Part shown: piece after piece, positions 17,879 to 64,000 of the stretch
Layout of the letters: every line of letters starts with the position of its first letter
Numbering within the stretch: position 1 is the stretch's first letter
DNA from: Neoechinorhynchus agilis
Lineage: Eukaryota; Animalia; Acanthocephala
Assembly (NCBI GenBank): GCA_051530055.1
Contig: CM121341.1
Span: forward strand, 19,198,784-19,262,783
Direction: 5' to 3'
Length of the DNA: 64,000 nucleotides
Made by a program: the position numbers and the translations under genes
The notes under the pieces: generated by a model
Seen by the model: the letters and a program-made list of their open reading frames with translations, nothing else
The model's database searches: none
What the model was told of the DNA's origin: nothing

Positions 17879-18469
17879 GCTTTTACGATCCCAATATTAA
17901 ATAATAAAGTGATAATCAAACACGGGATGTAACTCGATATTAACTTGCTCCGAATGCCCTTTCTAAGACGATATTCTAACCTCTATTTAAACGGCAACAT
18001 CGATTTTATCGACCTAAGAACATGAAAATAATCACTGAGTTTTAAGAAAATACATATAACATCGATATCTTCAGAAGATAATTAGTTGAAATAAAAGCAG
18101 AATCCCGACCAACTCACGCATGGGCGCTTCTTTAATTCAACTTGTAAAATCTATTCGCTTGCACATTTTAACACCAGCAAGCACATTTTGAGGAAAATCA
18201 AAAAAGATTTGCGATGCTGAACGCATTGTTATATTTTTAATTGAGTTGTATTTATGAACAAACTCAATTTAGCCATTTAAGATTTAAGGGCGAATCAATA
18301 TCAAAGCTGCGTTTCCATACTCATCAACGTTATCGCTGTTCGACATCAAATTCGATATGTAACTTTAATCGATTAAGATCATTGGAGAGATCAAACTTCA
18401 TCGAATACGATAATCGTTTAGATTTTCGGAGCATTTTGGTGCTCGTCCACAAGGGATCGCCTTTATCAA

Positions 18470-19985
18470 TATCAACCTTACACAATCTTTAAAGGATAAC
18501 TTTCATTAGATGTGGAAGTAACTTGGAGGTATAAAGGACAAAATTTAGTCGTAGCTGACGCTTAAGAAGCGGACAGCGCAAATAATGGATTGCTTCGATG
18601 CTGTCCCTTTTTTAGGAATGCTACCTTCATGCACTGCATTTGTTGATCGTAGCATTTTGTAGAATACAAAGGAAAATTAGACAGCGAGTTTACTAACGTG
18701 TACAAAACTGACTTCGAGAATCAATTTAAAAGACGTTCTATCGATATCGACGGCACCGAGTCTTTAAAGGATAACTTTCATTAGATGTGGAAGCAACTTG
18801 GAGGTATAAAGGACAAAATTTAATCGTAGCTGACGCTGAAGAAGCCGACAGCGCAAATAATGGATTGCTTCGATGCAGTCCCTTTTTTTAGGAATGCTTC
18901 CTTCATGCACTGCATTTGTGGATCGTAGCATTTTGTAGAATACAAAGGAAAATTAGACAGCGAGTTTACTAGCGTGTGGAAAACTGACTCCGAGAATCAA
19001 TTTAAAAGACGTTCTATCGATATCGACGGTACCGAGTCTTTAAAGGATAACTTTCATTAGACGTGGAAGTAACTTGGAGGTTTAAAGGACAAAATTTAAT
19101 CGTAGCTGACGCTGAAGAAGCCGACAGCGCAAATAATGGATTGCTTCGATGCAGTCCCTTTTTTTAGGAATGATTCCTTTATGCACTGCATTTGTTGATC
19201 GTAGCATTTTGTAGAATACAAAGGAAAATTAGATAGCGAGTTTACTAGCGTGTGCAAAACTGACTCCGAGATTCAATTTAAAAGACGTTCTATCGATATC
19301 GATCGTACCGAGTCTTTAAAGGATGACTGTCATTGGATGTGGAAGTAACTTTGGAGATATAAAGGACAGCATTTAATCGTAGCTGACGCTTAAGAAGCGG
19401 ACAGCGCAAATAATGGATTGCTTCGATGCAGTCCCTTTTTTACGAATGCTTCCTTCATGCACTGCATTTGTCAATCGTAGAATTTTGCAAAATAACAAGG
19501 AAAATTAGACCGCGAGTTTACTGACGTGTGCAAAACTGACTCCGAGAATCAATTTAAAAGACGTTCTATCGATATCGACCATACACAATCTTTAAAGGAT
19601 AACTTTCATTAGATGTGGTAGTAACTTGTGAGATATAAAGGACAGCATTTTATCGTAGCTGACACCTAAGAAGCCGACAGCGCAAATAATGGATTGCTTC
19701 GATGCAGTCCCTTTTTTGAACGCTACCTTCATGCACTACAGCATAATAGATTGCTTCGATGCAGTACCTTTTTTTGGAACGCTACCTTCATGCACTGCAT
19801 TTGTGGATCGTAGCATTTTGCAGAAAACAAAGGAAAATTAGACCGCGAGTTTACTGACGTGTGCAAAACTGACTCCGAGAATCAATTTAAAAGTGATTTT
19901 GTCGATAGCGACCGGACCCAGTCTTTAAAAGATAACTGCCATTAGATGTGGAAGTTACTTTGCAGATATAGGACAGCATTTTATG
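18470..19985. repeat. Tandem array, ~276-bp unit, about 5.4 copies
   Basis: Marker TTTAAA(G/A)GAT recurs at 18488, 18763, 19039, 19315, 19591 and 19924; the last unit has an extra ~57-bp internal duplication. Confidence 0.95.
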
Positions 19986-34265: not shown

Positions 34266-36541
34266 AGTGTTGTTTTTATGCGTCTTAGCACAGTGTTCGT
34301 TCAGCCGGGATAAAGACGTTGGTTTCATTATTTAGACAATGGAACGGGGAGCATCTTGAATAGATCATGGAAGTGTGATCTTCTCGCAGCTCAATTATAT
34401 TTTCTAGAGATGGATTACCGGTAGACTGTTTCGTGTTAAATAAACATTCAAAATGTTACATTGCTCATCGCGGCATTCTGAGCATCCCAAGGCATAATGC
34501 GCGCATTAATACGATCGATTGAGAGTAGAACATGCGACAAAAACCTCAAAAACGGATGCGAGTTTGTTTTAGTGAAGAGATGTTTCCTCAAGGAAGTCAT
34601 TTTTGGCATCAGACTGCCGTGCGCAGAATAACTTGCATTCGTTCGAGCGCAGCATCATATCGAACATATTTGCTCAAAGAAAACAACGGGGCAGAAGGAA
34701 GCGGACTGAGACATTTTAAGGAAAAACATTACAGCAATCACTGGAGGGGAAAAATTCCACTATGAGCTTGTTTACTTCAAATGTCGAGAAGCTAATTATG
34801 AAGTCAGAAGTTAAATCTGAGTTTGATGTCATGTTTCGAAATTAATTCGTTATATCGGCTTCCCTTGCTCAGATATTCAATTAAAAACTCAAGTGAATAA
34901 ACGCGTATTAGCCCGAATTTTGCCACCAGTGCATCCTAAATTCTTGGGCGATTGTCATTCATATGATTTCGATAAACTGATACGGCATCTAAAGAAATAC
35001 CAAAATGCCCAAAGGTTCACACTAGAAATTTGCGACAATGATGCTGATATAAGCCAATGCAATTTTTAAATTTTTCTTGCTGACCAAGTATTGATATTAA
35101 TATTGGACAAATCCAATGTATCTAAAGCCTAAAATAATGAAATATAAGACAACAATTTGTCATAATCGCAGTGCAACATTAGTAGTTGAAAAAAGAATGC
35201 GAAAAAATGTCGACATAAAAAGTATAAAAATTATTAAGCGATTCAATCCATTCGGCTGAGTTAAAGCAATAGGAGTCAATTGAAAATACTAGTTTCTTTT
35301 GCAAAAGCTCAGTTGTAAGGATTTTCAATTTTATAATATAGGGAAGCTTTGGAATTAAAATACAATTCGGGGCCAGTTTCAAGCAGAAAATTGGTTATAG
35401 GCTTCATATACCGAAATAAAAGCTTCAATATCGTCCATGCGAAACTTTGGTAGCGGATAAGATTTAGTCCCAGGAAATAAGAAGTCAAATCTAAGGTAAG
35501 ATTGTTAGAAGCGTTGAAACTATAGCTAATGGCGCACAACCAAAGGGGGCGAAATAACGCTGAAAGTAGGAAACTCACTGATGAGTGCCTCATACTCGGG
35601 AGATATCGGACTATCCGGAGGGATGTATAAACTCATAAGCGCATTATTAAGGGTTAAAATTATTCATTCGCTTCCCTGACCCATATTGATGGGCTGTGGA
35701 AAAGGCCTCACTTCAGCACAGAATAAATATAACTAAAATTAAATTTCAATTTTCTAACAATCGAAGCAGTTTTCACTTAAGGAATAAAAATGTTTGGAAC
35801 GCGAGTGCAAAAGTTGTGTTTTATGGGCTGCGAGAAATGTACCTTCCTAGGTTCACATTTGTAGTCTATAGCAATGGATAATTAATTCATCCAGGAATGT
35901 TTCCATGTCGAACACCCAAAGGGAATATCATTTGCATAGCATCCATTATCTGTAGATTCCCCAATGACGAATAGTAATTGAAGACAGATGACCAATGAAA
36001 TTCCTAAATTGTCTAGATTTTAGGTAATCTTAGAGGGATACTTAGATGTGACATTAGAGCTGGAAAATGTGCTCCGAATGCAGGTTAAGAGCAAACATGT
36101 TAAGATAAGTTGAGTATTGCTTGAACATTGTCAAATCAAAATAATTTATGTATGTCAGAGTGTGGAAGCGCACTCTGATAACATATCGACGACCGATGTG
36201 AGTGATTTTTCTTATAAGGATCCAGCCAACCTAAAGGGGAGGGAAACGTTTGAGTATCGCTGAAATCGAGTATGAAAGCATAGGCCGTTTGAAAATCGGC
36301 TTCGGACTACTCGTAGTTTTGACCGTCACTTCAGCACTTCACGGAATCGCCGTTAATTAAAAGCAGAGAAAATGCAGAGAAGCTGGATTTTCTTAAAGAA
36401 AAAGACTGCTTCGGTATTTAGTAAAGTATAAACAGCAATGTGTGAAAGGGATCCTAAGATTTCAATCACACACACGACTATCATTGGGTATTCGAGGATT
36501 TGTGTATAATATCTGACATTGTCAAGCGCGCTTTGAAGAGG

Positions 36542-38310
36542 TCATTTCCTGAATCCATTGGTTAACATATCTCTCGAAGGTTGTGATCGTTTTATTCTCT
36601 GTCGTCTTATCATCAGATAACGGCTGGGGTAGAGGCGATATGGATGTATATGCTTTTCGTGAATAGCAACGGAATGATCACGTCGAACGTGAGCAATACC
36701 TAACATTGCCGTGGCACCGATTGAAATAAAGAGACAAAAAATTAAGAACAGTAAGAGTTTTGAAGAAAGGTAAAGCCGTGAAATGTCGTCCGTGAACTTT
36801 GATTCAACAGATCGTAGACTTGAGTTTATGTCATTTATGAGTGACAGAGTTTCCTGTGAGTGCTTTAAATATAATTCTCCTGAAAGATTGTTAAAACAGT
36901 CAAGTAGAGTTTTGAGTGCCTCGATTTGTGACTTGTAATGTTGACTGAGTTGCTCGAGGTACGCATTTGTAAGCGATACGTTCTTATCGAGTTTTTGTAT
37001 CTTTTGATTGAGTCGAATTAAAGGAGGAATATTTGATTTTGATGAACTGTCCTCGCTGGTTCGATTAAAGTACGCACAAGAACCACTAGAATGACCAAGC
37101 GATGAGTTGGATAAATAACTTGGTTTCGTGAGCAGTAACTGTAAGTATCCATGGTAGTCATTGAGTGGATTAATGCTTCGTTGTAATAATCCTGATGACA
37201 TACGTTTAGACATTTGACAAAGTACTGAGCACTCCAAATCGGCACCTTTTGCTTGAAGGCCTCCAATTACATCATCACCGGTCTCCGTAGATTCAAGTTC
37301 AGCGTCGATGTGTTCATCGAATACAGTTCCGAACACTCGGAAAGAAGAAAGGGCACAATTTTGCTCGGTTCCGTACGTATCCAATATATCTGCCCTCACA
37401 TATTTAACGTACAGATTTGACCTATTCGTAGAAAATCGTTGTACTTTGCGTTCATTTTCACATGCAAATACATCAAGAATGGGTTGACCATCCCAATATG
37501 TTTTACGATGAACGATCTCAGGCTCATTTGCAGACTGGTTCACGGGCACTACTATTGCAGCCGATCTATTATTAGGACGAGTTGGAATGTAAGTTTTTGC
37601 ATTGCTTACTCGCAGTTCAATGACTTTAGGAAGATTGACAAACAGCTCTAAAGTGCCAAGTTCAATGTGAGTTATACGTATTAGTGTCAGATGATCGAAA
37701 AGATGCTATGTTCCCAGTTCAATTACCGCCGAACAACTAACAGCTCCTATGGGCTCACATAGTTGAACAACGAACCACATTTTCGATCGCCGTGGACATA
37801 GCATGTAAGTATCCGGACTATCATGTAAAACATTTTTTACATACTTCGAATCCATACTGTGTTCAATAATCTTTGAACCACAAGAAGCACTCGCATAGTT
37901 CTTTTGGGGAACATTGGTAACATCGGGATGCGATGTAGCTGTATGATTGTGCCTCGAATAGAATTCGCTATCGTTTTGCGGAATCATCGATTGAGCTCCA
38001 TTTGTTGTTTGTTTATCATTAAACGATCTGATTCGTATATTTTTCCATTCCTCAAACGAGGAAATGTTGGAGTCTAGAACGTAAACAACCGAGGATGATT
38101 CAGGTATCATTACGGTATCGTTTGTCCCATTGCAATATGAGTCAAATTGATTTTGTTTTGGGAGTAAAATAAACGCACATCAGAAAACCAATTTGAGCAT
38201 TTCGGTGAATGGTCTAGCATCTTCGAGCCCGACAAGGATCGGATACATAAACAACACATGGTACACAAAAGTCGGACCATTATTTGCAGATCCCAATTGT
38301 CGCTGAACAT
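36542..38310 (-). CDS. SUCO: SUN-domain ossification factor (SUCO/Slp1-like)
   Basis: KNYASASCGSKII, YMLCP, WFVVQLCEPI, KYVRADILDTYGTEQNCALSSFRVFGT, coiled coil LNQKIQKLDKNVSLTNAYLEQLSQHYK and a C-terminal TM; at least one short intron near 37700; 5' junction at 38110 unresolved. Confidence 0.85.
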
Positions 38311-38847
38311 CGTTCTAATCTAAAAATCGATCACAATTTTCGTTTAAATTGGTTCATCGGGAAGTAATGCCAAAAGGCATTGTAAACCAAAAGCTACTTT
38401 CAATAAAGACAAAGAGGTGCCACCTTGAGAAATAAATAGACAATATTTGGGTTCGTCAATGATAAAATACTGCTTGTTCGCAAACTAAATTGACATTAGA
38501 AGACAAGTTGTAAAACTCAAAGTTATCGTCGGAATCTCCTTTTGTTTAGATTAAAAAGGGGAGCTGTGGCCTAAAGTACTAGTCAGCAAAAGACATTGAT
38601 TAGCAATCTATACACTTGCATCATTGAACGCGAACAGCAATGATTTTTCTTGACATAATAGGATTCATAATGAACCATAACTATCGTCGTGTGGTTAATG
38701 AGGTGATAAAAATAAGAGGGTTGACTTTGAAATGCCCAATCTTAAGCAGATTCTAATGATTGAAATACTATCACACGTTGCTTAAGCAAATGCGTATCTG
38801 ATAGAGAATTCAATTGCGGTAGCATTTCTTGATTTATTTGACGAATC

Positions 38848-41774
38848 TTAAATACCAACCAACAACACTAACAAGCGCTAAACCGTACCTAAATGCGATA
38901 TGACCACTTATTTGCATATTGAAAGTTACGTACCATGTTAGAATATAACCCAAATGATTATCCGGCAGATCGAATCGAATTTGACCCGCTAATGGACCAC
39001 CCAGCACATCGCATCCTTAAGACATATTTTAGCCTAGAATTTGCATTATTGCACACCTTCTTCGGCCGTCACCAATATATTTTCGGTATCAGCATGCTCC
39101 GCCATTTGACCAACAATCTTCTGACACCAATGGTTTCTCTTCGGAGAGTTCATATTCAGTATAGAATACTGCAAAATTTGATAAAAAAATTAAGTTTTTG
39201 CAGGATCCAACCGTTTCAGATGGGGTTACATATCCGATGATCGTAGAAGGGCGAGGTCCTTCTGCGCATAAATTCTTCATGTTCATGGGCACAAATCCGC
39301 GATTGACTAAAATACGGCGATTCTTTGTTTTACTGTAGTCAGCGCTAGATCAATATAAGTTGAATCATTCTGCCCTTACCCAGGAAGGTTTGGATATGAT
39401 AGTTCGAATGGGGTGATCACATGAACTCCAACGGAGCGAATATTCTTATCTGGCCAGTGTTTTTTAGCTGCTTGATTACCCAATATATTTGCTCGAGATT
39501 CAAGTAGTATCTGTCGCTGATGATCGAAAGTTCCGGTGCATTTGACTTTTGTGTACAAGGGAATACTTTCGATCGATTGATTTCTAAATGAATCCGTAGA
39601 TCAAAAGTGAATTCGTTGAACCTACAAAAAGACGCATGAGAAAATAGGAAAATCGTCTTCGGCAAAAATACTGTCATCACGCAAAAAATTAGTATCTGAC
39701 GCTGATGATCGAAAATTCCGGTGCATTTGACTTTTGGGTACAAGGGAATACTTTAGATCGATTGATTTCTAAATGAATCCGTAGATCAAAAGTGAATTCG
39801 TTATACCTACAAAAAGACGCATGAGAAAATAGGAAAATCGCCTTCGTCAAAAATACTGTCATCACGCAAAAAATTGGTATCTGACGCTGATGATCGAAAA
39901 TTAAGGTGCACTTGACTATTGTGTGCAAGGGAATGCTTACGATCGATTGATTTCTAAATGAATCCGTAGATCGAAAGTGAATTCATTAATCTTACAAAAA
40001 GACGCATAAGAAAATAGGAAGATCGTCTTCGGCAAAAATACCGTCATCACGCAAAAAAATTGGTATCTTATGCGGATGATCGAAAATTCCGGTGCATTTG
40101 ACTATTGTGTACAAGGGAATACTTTCGATCGATTGATTTATAAATGAATCCGTAGATCGAAAGTGAATTCATTAATCCTACAAAAAGACGCATAAGAAAA
40201 TAGGAAAATCGTCTTCGGCAAAAATACAGTTATCACGCAAAAAATTGGTATCTGACGCTGATGATCGAAAATTCCGGTGCATTTGACTATTGTGTACAAG
40301 GGAATACTTTCGATCGATTGATTTCTAAATGAATCCGTAGATCGAAAGTGAATTCATTAATCCCACAAAAAGACGCATAAGAAAATAGGAAAATCGTCTT
40401 AGGCAAAAATACTGTCATCACGCAAAAAAATTAGTATCTGACGCTGATGATCGAAAATTCTGGTGCATTTGACTTTTGTGTACAAGGGAATACTTTCGAT
40501 CGATTGATTTCTAAATGAATCCGTAGATCAAAAGTGAATTCGTTAATCCTACAAAGAGACGCATAAGAAAATAGGAAAATCGTTTGGCAAAAATACTGTC
40601 ATCACGCAAAAAATTAGTATCTGACGCTGATGATCGAAAATTCTGGTGCATTTGACTTTTGTGTACAAGGGAATAATTTCGATCGATTGATTTCTAAATG
40701 AATCCGTAGATCGAAAGTGAATTCATTAATCCTACAAAAAGACGCATAAGAAAATAGGAAAATCGTTTGGCAAAAATACTGTCCTCACGCAAAAAAATTG
40801 TATCTGACGCTAATGATCGAAAATTCTGGTGCATTTGACTTTTGTGTACAAGGGAATACCTTCGATCGATTGATTTCTAAATGAATCCGTAGATCAAAAG
40901 TGAATTCATTAATCCTACAAAAAGACGCATGAGAAAATAGGAAAATCAACTTCGGCAAAAATACTGTCATCACGCAAAAAATTGGCATCTGACGCTGATG
41001 ATCGAAAGTTCCGGTGCATTTGACTTTTGGGTACAAGGGAATACTTTCGATCGATTGATTTCTAAATGAATCCATAGATCGAAAGTGAATTCATTAATCC
41101 TACAAAAAAGACTCAAAAGAAAATACGAAAATCGTCTTCGGCAAAGATACTGTCATCACGCAAAAACAATTACCGAAAATCATACGGGTTGTTGTTGTTT
41201 CCGCAGAGCGCAGCAATTTCCAATCGAAATGTCTACGGCGGACTTTTCAGAGACTTTTTTGGAAGACAACATTCGACAGTGTCATTACATGCATAATCAG
41301 GAAACACTTTTTTAAAATTGTAAAGAAATTAATCATTATTGTTTCAATTTCAATTAGCGATATTCACTCAGAAATAGATTTATATTGAAAATTGTCGGCC
41401 TTTTCGTTGGCCTTCTTCAGTCAGATTACTTTGGGGAGGAAAATTCGTGATTATAAATCTATTTCTGAGTGAATATCGCTAATTGAAATTGAAACTTTTT
41501 TAAAATTCAAGTTTTCACGGAACTCCAGAAATGTTATCGCTTTGGAAAAATGGAAGTTACTTTACAATTTTATGGTGAATTAAACTTACTCCATGAGAGA
41601 TAAAAGATCCACGGGCTGTGAATATCGCCATTTTTCAATTTGCTCCAAAAGATCATGTTTCCATTTGTGGCGCCGTATCTGCCAATTTCCAAGAAGAGTA
41701 AAAGTCGTAACGGGAACCACGAGCGTCACCAAAGACCCAGGTGAAAGCCACTTTGCTTTTAAAGGATATACCAT
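38848..41774 (-). CDS. SURF1: SURF1 cytochrome c oxidase assembly factor; exons 41774-41590, 39583-39380, 39332-39212, 39168-39057, 39015-38934, 38888-38848
   Basis: TFTLLGNWQIRRHKWK, VKCTGTFDH, GVHVITPF, ILVNRGFVP, GGPLAGQ, NHLGYILTWYGL; all five GT-AG junctions are phase-compatible (introns of 2006, 47, 43, 41 and 45 nt). Confidence 0.93.
39507..41165. repeat. Tandem array, 183-186-bp unit, nine copies, made of the SURF1 intron-1 3' end plus the start of exon 2
   Basis: Marker positions 39517, 39702, 39887, ~40073, 40258, 40444, 40627, 40810, 40995; minus strand of each unit reads ...catttag|AAATCAATCG...YxxVKCTGxFDHQRQ. Confidence 0.95.
41341..41495 (-). mobile_element. 44-bp perfect inverted repeat enclosing a mutated hammerhead-like core
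   Basis: Arms 41341-41384 and 41452-41495; the 67-bp spacer on the minus strand reads tga-CTGAAGA-a-GGCC-aacgaaaa-GGCC-GACA-attttca. Confidence 0.7.
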
Positions 41775-42069
41775 TTAAAAGAATGATCAAACGACGAACT
41801 TATCCGAATTATATAGGATTCTTTCATCTCCTGGAACAATCATGCTAAAGACTTGGGAATCTGTTCTTCAAATTCTCAATCGTACATTTGGGAGTTCCGC
41901 TCGCTCTATCTCACAGTATTTCTTAACTTCCATTATTGTAATTTTAACGAGTCTGAACAACATGGATTCCGATCGCCTTGGCATATTTTTTGTTCGAGAA
42001 ACCATAAATAATCTTCAAAAATTGTCGAGCTTAGGTTTTTGTTAATGTGCGATGGATTACAGGTATACA

Positions 42070-44365
42070 AATGAATCTTTTCGTTAGTTTTTATGTAGCC
42101 CTAAGACCACACACCCCTCCGCCCCGTTTCTCTCAAACGTCGGTCTTCAGCCACACAATTTTTCCATCGCTTTCTCAGCCTTCCGCGATCCATTCGATTT
42201 TCATTTCCTAAACTTTTCGAATGAATCGATTCGGCTCTTCACGTTTCACCATATCGCTCCATTGGATCCTTCGTTTCGCGATAGCTTCCTTCACGTCTTC
42301 CACCTTCGCTGAGCCCCGGACCGCATTATTTGGGATCATCTCTTGCCTGGTCACCCCACACATCCACTTCATCATGTTCAATTCGGCTCCCTGCATTCGC
42401 TTGATGTGATTGGCAGTGGTGTTCAATGTTAGTGACTACAAACAAATAAGTGCTCAAAACTGAACCTTGATGCAATCGTACGTTCACCGAGGAGCTATTC
42501 GTATCACCAACTGGCGTGCTTATATTCACTTTGCTCTGCCTGTACATGCCCTGAATTGTGGTGATATAAGTCTCGGGCAGAGTTTTCTTCTAAGACAGTT
42601 CCATACCAGTTTTCTAGGGACAGTATCATAGGCCTTTTCGAGATCGATGAACACGCTGTGCATTTCCCATCGTTTTTCATGACATTTTTCATATAACTGA
42701 CGTAACGCAAATACAGCTTCAGTACTACCCCTGCCGGACATAAATCCTTTCTGCTCCTCTGATATGGACATTTCGCTCCCCAGGCCTTGATCGATTATCC
42801 TTTCGTATAGCTTCATCGTGTGGCTCGACAATTTGATTCCTCGATAGCTTGAACAAACTCTAACATCTCCTCTCTGTTTGTATATCGGTACCAGCGTGGT
42901 CTGCCTCTATTACTCTGGCATCTTTTCCGTAGTAACTATTCGCCGGAAGAGATTTGTTAATAGTGGAACAGCATCAACTTAAAGCACTTTCCAGACCTCT
43001 ATGGGTATTTCGTTTGGGCCCGTCGCTTTCCCGTTTTCATCTTGGAAAGTGCTGTTTCAATTTGACCTCTGATATTGCGTTGACTAATCCTTCGTTAGGT
43101 TCGTGCACTCTTTCTACCCCATTCTTACTGTTCAGCAGTTGATCAAAGTATTCTCTCCACCTTTCTTTAACTTCTTTTTATTCGCTCAAAATGTTCCCAT
43201 CCTTGTCCTTAATTTGCTTTACCGTCGTAATGTCCTGCGATCCTTGATCTTCGCCACTTTGAACACATATGACATTGTTTTGTCTTCTTGCAGATTTAAT
43301 CCACCATCTGTTCGTATCCTCAATGTCGTGATTTAGAATGCAAATGACCTTCTTGAATTCCTCACGATATGGAGTTTAATCAAGTCGCCACCATTTGATT
43401 TTACTAGGCATCCTGTATTTGCGCCGTTTGATGTTCTTGATCTCCAGGTCCATGTACAGTAAAGGGTGTTTCGAAGCGCATGTCTCTCCAGGTATAGTTT
43501 TTACGGTTTTCACTTCTCTCAATTTTTCTTGTGGATAGAGGATATAATCGATTTGAGTTTTCCTCCCGCCGCCGATGTTGTAAGTCACAAGTTATCGTTC
43601 TTCTTTCTTAAAGTAAGTGTTGGTGATCCGAAGTTTATTTGCCAACGCAAAGTCCAAAATGTTTTCACTTCTACCGTGTGCTTGACACCAGCTCGAGTTT
43701 TCCGCGCCATTATGACCGTTGAGGTCTCCACATATTATACATCTTTCCTCCTTGATTTCATGGACCACATCATATAGATCTTCTCAAAACTGGTCTTTCT
43801 CCTGCTGCGTGAGTCCAGCTTATGGGGCATAACAAGAAACGATCACCAAGCATTGCCCTCCAAGATCCATCTGCATCCACATTATCCTATCACTTTTCCT
43901 ATAGACTTCTAAGACTCCATCTGCATGTTTATCACTCAAGACAATTCCAACTCCATTTCGATCAGAAGATGAACCATTATAAAATAGTTTGAAGCCGTCT
44001 CCAAGATCCCGTGCTTTGGCTCCTTTCCATTTCAGCTTCTGGGAACACATAGACATTCAATCCTCATTCTCTTCATCATATGCACTATTTCCATCGATTT
44101 ACCCGTCATTGTCCCGACGTTTAAAGATCCAACTTTCAGTTTTCGTTCGCGTTTGGGTCTTTGTCCATTTGATAATTTATTCACAGAGATCGGACCAGTT
44201 CTTTGTGCATCGCATACAGGGTACGCCCTAATCCTTCTTTGTGTGTTTGTTATACCGCTCAATTTTGATTTTTATTGGTGCAAGGTTTTATGGTCGGATG
44301 CCATTCCTGGCACCAGCCCTCTTCATTTATCCGGGCTCGGGACTGGCACCGAGTTTCCTCGGCCA
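42070..44365 (-). mobile_element. Decayed RTE-clade LINE (APE + RT) with intact 5' region and an internal RT deletion
   Basis: KVGSLNVGTMTG, KWKGAKAR, NGVGI, SCYAP, KTQIDYIL, TIPGETCASKH, YRGIKL, FIDLEKAYD, LHQGSVLS, AELNMMKWMCGVTR; many frameshifts; 3' boundary approximate. Confidence 0.9.
44313..44364 (-). ncRNA. Twister ribozyme (P1 type) 3' portion at the RTE 5' end
   Basis: GC-CGAG-GAAA-CUCG-G-UGCCAGUCCCGAGCCCGGAUAAA-UGAA-GAGGG-CUGG; 21 of 23 positions match the recalled twister core UGCCGGUCCCAAGCCCGGAUAAA; 5' strands of P1/P2 absent. Confidence 0.75.
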
Positions 44366-44367
44366 TA

Positions 44368-44520
44368 ACATAAATGATTTATTTGAAATATTTCACGAGG
44401 TAGCCTCGCATCATCAGTCATTGTTTAAGTGTTTTATTGAACCACAATTCTAATTTGATTATGCCGAAGGATTTTATATCGATGATTTAAGCGAATTTTT
44501 CTGTTCAACTTTAATGAGCT
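44368..44520 (-). ncRNA. Intact-looking hammerhead-like core with an adjacent inverted Penelope-like remnant
   Basis: Minus strand: atga-CTGATGA-t-GCGAGG-cta-CCTCGT-GAAA-tatttca (44417-44385); plus strand 44440-44480 accacaattctaa...ccgaaggatttt is the downstream part of the same family. Confidence 0.65.
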
Positions 44521-45128
44521 TTGTAAACTCTTCCATCTCGTCTCTCAGTGATATCAGCTGCTTTGTCATCCAACGACGTCTTCGTTATCAAGGACTACGA
44601 GAGCTTTATCGCCAAAACATATTCGCGAATGTTGATAAAAAAAGAACTCATTGCAACCTTTCTAGATTTCGTATTATGTCGTTTTTACTGTCAAAATCTG
44701 TTATTTGTCTAAAGTGTACATAATCGTGTCCATTCATCAAAATTGAAGCTTGTGAATAGTGCCGTTTTTTACATATTTGTCTTTACACTTCTAGTAGCTC
44801 TACTTGGTCAGAGTTCAACAAGTATCACCAAAGTCGAATCAATTTCGACAGTGCAAATAATGGCCAACAAACTATTTATGAACCGCAAACACCTCTTTTT
44901 AATTTACGTTTTTAATGATGCCTAAGCTTCCCTGGTGCACATTTGAGTATCGCAAATTAACGATGCCATTTGGAAATTTTTGACTGCGCGAATTTGACGG
45001 AATTTGTCGCTTAGTTTTTCGAGTTACTGTGACCATCGGAAAAGCGAATGCGATGGATCGAACTTCTGTACGTTTCCAACAAGGATCTTTTTTGCTTATA
45101 GAGAACCTTCTTTTAACCGGCAAAGACA

Positions 45129-46080
45129 ATGGAGAACAAGTCAAATTCATCGCTCAATCACGAGGAAAACAACGGTCTAAACATTGACGAGGAAGATGAC
45201 GACCTTCGCCTCTTGCTGTCGGCAAATAATGCTGACGCGGAAGTTCAGAAGGAAAAAGAATGGTCGTCATACGTCAGTAGCAGAATATCTTCAGCTTTCC
45301 AAAGACGATCTTCGTCATCAACCTCTTGGTCATCTAGCGCATCTTCCTCATCCAACACACACTGGCTCACAAGATACTATAGTTGTCTTGTTTGTGAATC
45401 ATTGTGATAGCTCACAGCATCGATCGACCTGCACTTCCAGCGATCCAAGCCATATGCAGTCGTATACCGAACAATTCATGAGACTTCAACCGGATCTTAA
45501 TGGAGTACTTAATCGTGATCAGGCTCTTGAATTCTTTTCAAAATCAAATATGCCCATGGAAGAGATTGAGACGATTTTTAAACTTGCGGACAATGATCGG
45601 GACAACTGTCTAAATCTCGAGGAATTTGTGTTAGCAATGCACATGATTGTGGCAAGCATGAAACAATCCGAGCGGTATGGAATGGATAGCAGCGATAGCG
45701 GAGAAACTGACGCAGGACGAGAAAGTCCTGTTCTTGAGCTGTCCAATTTTAGTTCTGAAATTAGTACTGATCGGATTAATGCAGGAACTCTTCATGCACC
45801 TAAGCCTATCAGATCCGACTTTCCATTCAACGATCAGCACCATAAGATAGACCCCTTTGATTTCAGTGAACTCGAAGTGCTTTTGGAAAAGGCCGATGAT
45901 CATAATGAGCTAATCGCTAGGGCAATCGAATCAGTGAAAGACGATCCAATAGCAATCGAGGAACTTACAATACGGCAAAATGAATTTAATTCCGAATTGG
46001 CGAATGCCGTCAGGCAATGGAATCACGTTTTTGTCAAATTTGCCGAATTTTCAATTGAAAGCAAAGCTCGTAGAGAATAA
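45129..46080 (+). CDS. EH-domain protein, REPS1/2-like; 5' exon junction unresolved
   Basis: YTEQFMRLQPDLNG...FFSKSNMP...IFKLADNDRDNCLNLEEFVLAMHMIV (EH/EF-hand domain) and a C-terminal coiled coil ending NSEL. Confidence 0.75.
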
Positions 46081-57361: not shown

Positions 57362-58560
57362 AATGCTGTCCTATATCTGCAAAGTAACTTCCACATCTAA
57401 TGGCAGTTATCTTTTAAAGACTGGGTCCGGTCGCTATCGACAAAATCACTTTTAAATTGATTCTCGGAGTCAGTTTTGCACACGTCAGTAAACTCGCGGT
57501 CTAATTTTCCTTTGTTTTCTGCAAAATGCTACGATCCACAAATGCAGTGCATGAAGGTAGCGTTCCAAAAAAAGGTACTGCATCGAAGCAATCTATTATG
57601 CTGTAGTGCATGAAGGTAGCGTTCAAAAAAGGGACTGCATCGAAGCAATCCATTATTTGCGCTGTCGGCTTCTTAGGTGTCAGCTACGATAAAATGCTGT
57701 CCTTTATATCTCACAAGTTACTACCACATCTAATGAAAGTTATCCTTTAAAGATTGTGTATGGTCGATATCGATAGAACGTCTTTTAAATTGATTCTCGG
57801 AGTCAGTTTTGCACACGTCAGTAAACTCGCGGTCTAATTTTCCTTGTTATTTTGCAAAATTCTACGATTGACAAATGCAGTGCATGAAGGAAGCATTCGT
57901 AAAAAAGGGACTGCATCGAAGCAATCCATTATTTGCGCTGTCCGCTTCTTAAGCGTCAGCTACGATTAAATGCTGTCCTTTATATCTCCAAAGTTACTTC
58001 CACATCCAATGACAGTCATCCTTTAAAGACTCGGTACGGTCGATATCGATAGAACGTCTTTTAAATTGATTCTCGGAGTCAGTTTTGCACACGCTAGTAA
58101 ACTCGCTGTCTAATTTTCCTTTGTATTCTACAAAATGCTACGATCAACAAATGCAGTGCATGAAGGAATCATTCCTAAAAAAAGGGACTGCATCGAAGCA
58201 ATCCATTATTTGCGCTGTCGGCTTCTTCAGCGTCAGCTACGATTAAATTTTGTCCTTTATACCTCCAAGTTGCTTCCACATCTAATGAAAGTTATCCTTT
58301 AAAGACTCGGTGCCGTCGATATCGATAGAACGTCTTTTAAATTGATTCTCGAAGTCAGTTTTCCACACGCTAGTAAACTCGCTGTTTAATTTTCCTTTGT
58401 ATTCTACAAAATCCTACGATCCACATATGCAGTGCATGAAAGTAGCGTTCCAAAAAAGAACTGCATCGAAGCAATCCAAAATTTGCACTGTCGGTTTTTA
58501 AAACATCAGCTACGATTAAATGCTATCCTTTATATCTGTAAAGTTACTTATTTTGCCATT
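57360..58560. repeat. Tandem array, ~276-bp unit, about 4.3 copies
   Basis: Reverse complement of the 18470-19985 array, including the 57-bp internal duplication in the innermost unit. Confidence 0.93.
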
Positions 58561-62479: not shown

Positions 62480-64000
62480 ACGACATTGTTTTTCCATAAA
62501 GGGAATTTTGTTATTTATAGGAGCGGTGAAATTTGTTATAAACTAAAATTCTTAATTTGCGGATGCAAATCTGTTCACGTCCATCAATCGTGTGCACAAA
62601 AAGAAAATTAAAACCCAATAAAGAATATTTAAATCACAAGAACAACTCTTTTGCAATAATTTATTTTTTCGAACGTAAACGACATTGTTTTTTTATTAAG
62701 GGAATTTTGTTGTTTATAGGAGCAGTGAAAGTTGCTATAAACTAAATTTCTTATTTTACCGATTCAATTCTGTTTACGTCAATAAATCGTATGAACATAC
62801 AAAAGAAAATTAAAATCCAATAAAGAATATCTAAATCACATGAACTGCACGTTTGTATTAATTTAATTAAAATCCAATGAAGAATATCTAAACCACAAGA
62901 ACTTCACTTTTGTATTAATTTAGTTGTTCGAACCTATACGACATTGTTTTTCCACAAGGGGAATTTTGTGGTTTATGAGAGCAGTGAAAATTGTTAAAAA
63001 AATTTTTTAATTTGCTGATGCAAATCTGTTTACGTCCATAAATCGTATGCACATACAAAGGAAAATTAAAATCCAATCAAGAATATCTAAATCACAAGAA
63101 GAACTGTTTTGTATTAATTTATTTGTTCGAACGTATACGACATAATTTTTCCACGAGGGGAATTTTGTGGTTTATAAGAGAAGTGAAAGTTGTTATAAAC
63201 AAAAAAATTTAATTGCTGATGCAAATCTGTTTACGTCAATAAATGGTATGCACATACAAAATAAAATTAAAATCCAATAAAGAATATTTAATCACAAGAA
63301 CTGCACGTTTGTATTATTTTTTTTGTTCGAACCAATACGACATTGTTTTTCCATAAGGGGAATTTTGTTGTTTATAGGAGCAGTGAAAATTGTTATAAAC
63401 TAAATTTCTTATCTTACCGATTCAAATCTCTTTACGTCCATAAGTCGTGCGCACATACAAAAGAAAATTAAAATCCAATAAAGAATATCTAAATCACAAG
63501 AACAACTCTTCTGTATTAATTTATTTGATCGAACGTATACGACATTGTTTTTCCATAAAGGTAATTTCGTTATTTATAGGAGCCGTGAAAGTTGTAACAA
63601 ACAAAAATTCTTAATTTGCTGATGCAAATCTGTTTGCGTCCATAAATTGTATGCAATACAAAAGAAAATTAAAATTCAATAAAGAACGGCACGAAGCTTT
63701 TGTTCGGAACTCGGAAGACGACTTGCAGCAGAAACAGGGGAGCGACGCGAGAGGATTTTACTGATACAAAGAATAAGCCTCGCAATCCAACGAGGAAATG
63801 CGGTCAGCGTCCGGGGGACGATTTAATCATTTTAAAATAAATCTGGAATAAGCAAAAAAAATCACAAGAACAACTCCTTTGTATTAATTTATTTGTTTGA
63901 ACGTATAAGACATTGTTTTTCCATAAAGAGAATTTTATTGTTTGTAGGTTCAGTGAAAGTTGTTATAAACTAAAATTTTTAATTTGCTGATGCAAAGCGT
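62480..64000. repeat. AT-rich tandem array, ~200-bp unit, at least 7 copies, running off the window end
   Basis: gacattgtttttccataa marker near 62481, 62680, 62940, 63140, 63340, 63541 and 63910. Confidence 0.9.
63687..63861 (+). mobile_element. 5'-truncated 3' end of a second CRE-like RLE family with an A-tail, inserted in the satellite
   Basis: Encodes ELGRRLAAETGERRERILLIQRISLAIQRGNAVSVRGTI*, then AATAAA and A8; the satellite resumes with a few bases lost and no TSD. Confidence 0.85.

Follow-up and report, generated by a model that had tools for sequence, protein, structure and literature searches.

A probable mirage-type minisatellite across the intron 1/exon 2 boundary of SURF1 in Neoechinorhynchus agilis

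Tandem repeats lying over an intron–exon boundary were named 'mirages' in the amphioxus Adh3 gene (Canestro et al. 2002 NAR 30:2871, cited in PMC3087553). In the amphioxus globin gene BflGb6, the repeat consists of an intron's 3′ end together with the 5′ portion of exon 2, arranged as three to six copies of a 150–160-bp unit with 81–100% identity (Ebner et al. 2010, PMC3087553). Most BflGb6 copies keep the splice signal, reverse transcription–polymerase chain reaction shows normal splicing, and the boundary units fall outside homogenisation (PMC3087553). Intron 7 of human F7 contains a 37-bp variable number tandem repeat (VNTR) whose terminal unit crosses the exon–intron boundary, and in which identical functional pseudo-sites stay silent (Borensztajn et al. 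2006, PMC1557585). Two further systems are relevant: decoy exons, which favor the retention of introns (Parra et al. 2018, PMC6097662), and a tandem duplication across the intron 1/exon 2 boundary of potato RdRp, from which a new exon arose along with a new intron (PMC4974935). Here we analyze an array of nine 185-bp units located over the intron 1/exon 2 boundary of SURF1 in the acanthocephalan Neoechinorhynchus agilis. The window, that is, the whole stretch of DNA analyzed, comprises 64,000 nucleotides of contig CM121341.1 (assembly GCA_051530055.1, positions 19,198,784 to 19,262,783). We found no paper reporting mirage arrays in this animal group, no dedicated literature search having been made.

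The gene model was built on the minus strand within the window, and positions follow the numbering of the whole stretch. The data published for N. agilis include a hybrid assembly and 74 individually sequenced RNA libraries (PMC12690905). The comparison with read contigs covered positions 38000–42500; run X1 is DNA, whereas runs X2, X3 and X4 are RNA from three individual worms. The SURF1 model has six exons and an open frame of 252 amino acids (aa), and its parts, together with the array, are as follows:

41590–41774, minus strand: exon 1, 185 nt, with the ATG at 41774, the first transmembrane stretch and the WQxxR motif (Pfam SURF1 E = 7.6e-08, profile positions 2–40; RNA contigs at depth 101–114).
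39584–41589, minus strand: intron 1, 2006 nt, GTAAGT...TTTAG, containing eight extra repeat units and a foldback element (gene model; RNA runs X2 and X4 show the joint 39583/41590, its ends being CT..AC).
39507–41166, minus strand: tandem array of nine 185-bp units, named u1 to u9 in minus-strand order (TRF and unit alignment, see below).
39769–41063, minus strand: span of the eight decoy acceptor dinucleotides.
39380–39583, minus strand: exon 2, 204 nt, the first 77 nt being the exon part of unit u9, which bears the authentic acceptor (Pfam SURF1 E = 6.3e-07, profile positions 53–89, colinear with exon 1; RNA contigs run on through exons 3–5 with zero differences).
39212–39332, minus strand: exon 3, with the ILVNRGFVP motif (both flanking joints in three RNA runs).
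39057–39168, minus strand: exon 4 (gene model; joints in three RNA runs).
38934–39015, minus strand: exon 5 (gene model; joints in RNA runs).
38834–38888, minus strand: exon 6, including the stop codon at 38836–38834 (exon 5/6 joint in RNA run X2).

Introns 2 to 5 of the model measure 47, 43, 41 and 45 nt, as against 2006 nt for intron 1. This is the same model that a first-pass annotation had drawn from the letters, and every one of its joints is present in RNA contigs. The identity of the gene is given by matches to PF02104 (SURF1/Shy1), the exon 1 piece scoring 33.4 bits and the exon 2 piece 30.3 bits with a curated cut-off of 23.4. The exon 3 piece (40 aa; E = 0.005, 17.6 bits) lies under the gathering score when taken alone and is colinear with the others (profile positions 93–127). 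At the exon 1/2 junction, about 13 residues span 12 profile positions, and therefore one, and only one, copy of the exon 2 start belongs in the protein. A word search for homologues with the 67-aa exon 2 piece gave no candidate, a result that is uninformative given the length limits of the search.

Tandem Repeats Finder (TRF) reports a single array for this locus, at 39507–41166 (period 185, 9.0 copies, 93% matches, score 2824); a 371-bp period scores about equally. Each unit is formed by 108 nt of the 3′ end of intron 1 followed by the first 77 nt of exon 2, as the first-pass annotation had recognized. Allowing up to three mismatches, nine minus-strand copies of the first 31 nt of exon 2 are present in the window (0 expected by chance), and a BLAST search of one unit against the 64-kb window showed no copy beyond the array. 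From the unit alignment, the first exon-like bases of the units are 41061, 40876, 40693, 40510, 40324, 40139, 39953, 39768 and 39583. The acceptor dinucleotide is intact in seven of the eight decoys (41063–41062, 40878–40877, 40695–40694, 40512–40511, 40326–40325, 39955–39954 and 39770–39769). The sixth unit (first base 40139) carries AT, not AG, at 40141–40140, and AG is present in eight of the nine copies overall. The earlier list of acceptors, in which the loss of AG in the sixth unit was already marked, agrees with ours within 1–2 nt. It had been presented as an acceptor amplified nine times; there are nine copies in all, but only eight are extra, and seven of these have AG. Reading proceeds in frame solely from the acceptor at 39583, as had been stated before, while from each of the other eight a stop is reached 16–277 nt past the junction.

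Pairwise identity between units, taken from the alignment matrix, is 88–96%, with a mean pairwise divergence of 7.1%; the differences consist of substitutions and a few indels. Unit u1 is the most divergent. A C at position +54 is found only in the boundary units u1 and u9, the internal units having T, a pattern that fits an array which may have grown, like those of amphioxus, through copying of internal units. A tree of the units has no supported forks and contains a weak odd/even split (55/85) which echoes the 371-bp period of TRF. The junction between units (GATACTA followed by ATTTTTTGCG) has TA in common with both parental sequences, that is, a 2-nt microhomology. Once the eight extra units are subtracted, intron 1 would measure about 528 nt. 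At position 40069, in unit u6, the window has T where X1 and X2–X4 alike have G; either an assembly error has persisted here or the site is polymorphic.

Runs X2–X4 behave as RNA: the four small introns all appear in them as exact joints, the ends reading CT..AC (GT..AG in gene orientation), and their depth is zero across the intergenic region 38453–38754. The SURF1 contigs in these runs match the locus without differences over more than 500 nt, are correctly spliced and have a depth similar to that of the neighboring gene. The first-pass annotation had named the lack of any SURF1 transcript from this locus as grounds for giving up its account, and such transcripts do exist. Exon 1 (41590) is spliced to one of the repeat-family acceptors, which maps to 39583 in X2 and X4 and to 41061 in X3. 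The contigs containing this junction extend 30–35 nt past the acceptor, and u1, u4, u5, u6 and u9 share their first 31 nt exactly, which leaves the mapped acceptor ambiguous. We accordingly rejected the X3 joint at 41061 as an instance of decoy use, the 30 letters beyond it being the same in those five units.

Depth is more informative. The contigs with the exon 1 junction have depths of 114, 106 and 101, and those that carry u9-specific bases and run into exons 3–5 have depths of 125, 168 and 94. RNA contigs specific for other units (39962–40104 and 40754–40842) reach only 3.6–8.0, about 2–6% of exon depth. In the unique 5′ part of intron 1, RNA depth is 0–3.5, or 0–3% of exon depth, which indicates low intron retention; the signal in the bin 41473–41623 is wholly accounted for by the 34 nt of exon 1 included in it. 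No joint that must be a decoy joint, and no joint inside the array, either of a 42-nt or of a cassette type, was found in the RNA contigs of X2–X4. As unit-specific RNA depth is far below both exon and junction depth, the last acceptor is assigned as the dominant one: in steady-state SURF1 mRNA the joint from exon 1 to the last acceptor dominates, an assignment made from depth. The first-pass annotation had posed a choice, either to skip the decoys or to make frameshifted mRNA. Each decoy does lead to an early stop and the last acceptor does dominate, but the contigs contain no decoy joint.

We consider it probable that the array is a mirage-type minisatellite, neutral or slightly costly, and neither a regulator nor a sign of gene decay. 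Its units lie head to tail and are of minisatellite size, and they cross an RNA-confirmed intron–exon boundary together with its splice signal. Coding capacity is kept and one terminal copy is used, as judged from RNA depth and the Pfam register, since the junction contigs cannot separate five of the units. On this account, a 185-bp segment across the boundary (108 + 77 nt) would have been duplicated in tandem via the 2-nt TA microhomology, and slippage or unequal exchange, mainly of internal units, would then have raised the copy number to nine. Growth of the array would have stretched intron 1 from about 528 nt to its present 2006 nt. The choice between duplicated splice sites is governed by exon sequence and context. 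The last acceptor probably wins because it is the only one backed by the rest of exon 2 and by the GTAAGG donor 204 nt downstream, which would allow recognition across the exon. Transcripts spliced to a decoy would meet an early stop and then be removed by nonsense-mediated decay (NMD). The array would be tolerated because the distal copy still gives normal mRNA, and it would have no function, being a by-product of a minisatellite-rich genome.

Several points weigh against this account. No single contig joins exon 1 to u9-specific bases, so the last acceptor is assigned through depth. Unit-specific RNA depth (about 4–8) is somewhat higher than that of the upstream unique intron (about 1–3.5), and this excess could be low-level decoy use. 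True decoy use could lie well above the steady-state 2–6%, because rare variants are lost from contigs and RNA spliced to decoys would be concealed by NMD; a splicing cost masked by NMD could thus exist. Exon definition in this lineage is assumed, and the copy number of nine is taken from the assembly, short contigs being unable to give copy number. Finally, the interval from −25 to +13 around the acceptor has 1.8% changes compared with 4.0% overall, the lowest sliding window having 6 changes compared with a mean of 13.8 (uncorrected P = 0.017). We rejected selection on the acceptor core as a reading of this dip, which is the minimum of a sliding scan and is not significant after allowing for window choice.

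The alternative that survives best, itself quite unlikely, is that the decoys are regulatory. A controlled share of SURF1 pre-mRNA would be spliced to the decoys, or held unspliced by them, producing NMD targets or retained introns and in this way setting the level of a complex IV assembly factor. Seven intact, nearly identical acceptors upstream of the real one, an early stop in every decoy product, the slight excess of unit-specific RNA and the mildly low substitution rate of the acceptor core are all in keeping with it, and promotion of intron retention by decoy exons is a known mechanism (PMC6097662). Against it stands the pattern of divergence among units. They diverge from their consensus by 4.0% per site: the distal part of the intron stands at 4.3%, its proximal part at 4.2% and the exon part at 3.1–4.1%. 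At 4.0% per site, 7.4 of the eight decoy AGs are expected to be intact and 7 are observed. The retention of AG and the even divergence fit neutral drift, the decoy signals not being kept beyond the neutral expectation. RNA from the array amounts to about 2–6% of exon depth and that from the unique 5′ intron to 0–3%, in three individual-worm runs which report the steady state and in which NMD could mask decoy products, and the RNA contigs contain no decoy joint. The suggestion of the first-pass annotation that the decoys tune complex IV assembly finds no support in these data.

That the array is an assembly artefact, the true genome having one or few units that the assembler inflated, appears very improbable. 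In its favor, the hybrid assembly was made from about 50 pooled worms (PMC12690905), only 0.70 of the words sampled from the stretch are present in run X1, base 40069 disagrees with all four runs, and the copy number is an assembly figure. However, several unit-specific stretches (39962–40104, 40754–40842 and 41079–41343) exist as short-read DNA contigs and recur in the RNA runs, which belong to a second study. Their depth in X1 is 112–124, whereas single-copy DNA has about 125–128. Moreover, units differ at 3–11% of positions, which an echo would not yield. As the unit-specific variants are found at single-copy depth, the unit variants are real, each present once, and the array is no assembly echo, in agreement with what had been argued earlier from the differences between units.

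It is more doubtful still that we are observing the birth of introns and exons, with repeat copies being recruited as new exons flanked by a new short intron, as in potato RdRp or in the Rogers model. Each unit does contain a GT...AG segment (GTAGGA...TTTAG, about 42 nt) that matches the normal introns of SURF1 in length, a few units could supply open in-frame pseudo-exons, and the potato case is a precedent (PMC4974935). Nevertheless, the pseudo-exon from a decoy acceptor to the GTAGGA-type donor, 141–147 nt long among units, is out of frame in some of them (143 nt in u5) and closed by a stop in others. The Pfam register over exons 1 and 2 has no room for inserted copies, and no RNA contig has such joints. 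The use of a mini-intron or cassette within units was therefore rejected, as neither a consistent open frame nor joints in RNA contigs were found for it. Decay of SURF1 at this locus, which the first-pass annotation had also entertained, with an intact paralog elsewhere doing the work, has nothing in its favor besides the unusual intron and is hardly credible given the intact open frame, the colinear Pfam matches and the spliced, high-depth RNA contigs that are identical to the locus across more than 500 nt.

A further element lies in the stretch of intron 1 outside the repeats:

41341–41495, strand unassigned: foldback element with perfect 44-nt arms and a 67-nt loop.

In the bin of this element the DNA word depth is about 109,000, compared with about 125 for single-copy DNA, and part of the foldback is accordingly extremely abundant in the genome; within the 64-kb window this is its only copy. 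The sole Rfam match in 36000–46000, to mir-3140, was treated as chance (30.7 bits with a gathering score of 93). Four other large-unit arrays, with units of 200–280 bp, are present in the window, and arrays make up several percent of it. They include the following:

18464–19737 and 57605–58549: tandem arrays with a 276-bp unit each.
62606–63686: tandem array with 201/259-bp units.

The printed, unaligned consensus units suggest that the two 276-bp arrays are one family in opposite orientation. Just upstream of SURF1, at about 42200–44300 on the minus strand, there are broken open reading frames (reverse-transcriptase-like and endonuclease-like), a pattern as expected for a non-LTR retrotransposon, judging from sequence.

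At the other end of the gene, the SURF1 stop codon sits within an AATAAA at 38833–38838. Together with the zero RNA depth over 38453–38754, this suggests that the 3′ untranslated region has only a few tens of bases. Downstream lies a SUN-domain (Sad1_UNC) gene, with an acceptor (TTTTTAG) at 38319–38320 on the minus strand, 9 nt upstream of its ATG at 38310. At this acceptor RNA run X4 carries 27 extra letters, in RNA sense CCGATCTGTCGTAAACACTTGCAAACA, and X2 shows 4 extra letters. This 27-nt leader-like sequence is not present in the 64-kb window at three mismatches or fewer; it is a candidate spliced leader, or a candidate for a very distant 5′ exon. A contig of 2288 nt in X3 joins the donor of SURF1 exon 5 (38934) to the acceptor at 38319, omitting exon 6 and the 614 intergenic nucleotides. 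The join creates a stop (TG/A) at codon 235, the SUN-domain gene following on the same RNA, and SURF1 made from it would lose its C-terminal helix. In X3 and X4, depth over SURF1 exon 6 is zero, though such holes prove nothing. Within the SUN-domain gene, a 65-nt piece at 38136–38200 (minus strand) is removed in all three RNA runs, and its removal restores the reading frame. It has no GT..AG ends; the ends are AT..TA, or AA..AT with the cut shifted by one, and they pair into a stem. The piece resembles non-canonical hairpin interruptions.

Returning to the array, boundary-spanning architecture has been published for amphioxus (PMC3087553), which points to what may be a general mutational process and not a device specific to SURF1, and nothing special about SURF1 or complex IV follows from it. 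The array provides a natural experiment in splice-site choice, as eight nearly identical acceptors, with their own branch regions and pyrimidine tracts, separate the donor from the productive acceptor. In RNA the latter still dominates, so that either context beyond the acceptor or decay of the wrong products decides the outcome. The array also shows one route from a short intron to a long one. A more far-reaching proposal, which we regard as unlikely, is that this genome makes acceptor-spanning mirage arrays at many genes, and that a spliceosome used to introns of about 45 nt consistently settles on the farthest of many near-identical acceptors spread over 2–4 kb. If true, it would imply a rule of 3′ splice-site choice independent of proximity, such as exon definition dependent on the downstream donor or a search policed by NMD, and possibly a genuine, tunable loss of output from the genes concerned.

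Among the known systems, the SURF1 array differs from the potato RdRp duplication in its fate. The initial mutation is the same, but in SURF1 the upstream copies remain intronic and no new junction is seen. Like the decoy exons of Parra et al., the SURF1 units are non-productive splice sites inside a long intron which could engage the terminal sites; those decoy exons, however, are conserved and regulated and cause strong retention, whereas retention in SURF1 is 0–3% and there is no sign of selection. The F7 VNTR is similar in that an authentic site is accompanied by silent near-copies in a minisatellite that crosses the boundary. In F7 it is the donor that is repeated and the most upstream site that is used, whereas SURF1 repeats the acceptor and uses the one farthest downstream; the F7 units are, in addition, much shorter, and the F7 mechanism has been experimentally tested. 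With the amphioxus mirages the SURF1 array shares the boundary-spanning unit, the retained splice signals and the undisturbed regular splicing. Allelic or somatic length instability is part of the description of the amphioxus mirages, whereas the SURF1 array is known from an assembly and short contigs. The SURF1 case also belongs to a different phylum and to a gene with tiny introns (41–47 nt), a setting in which one would expect cross-intron pairing to favor the nearest acceptor. It would carry mirage minisatellites beyond amphioxus into a second, distant group of animals.

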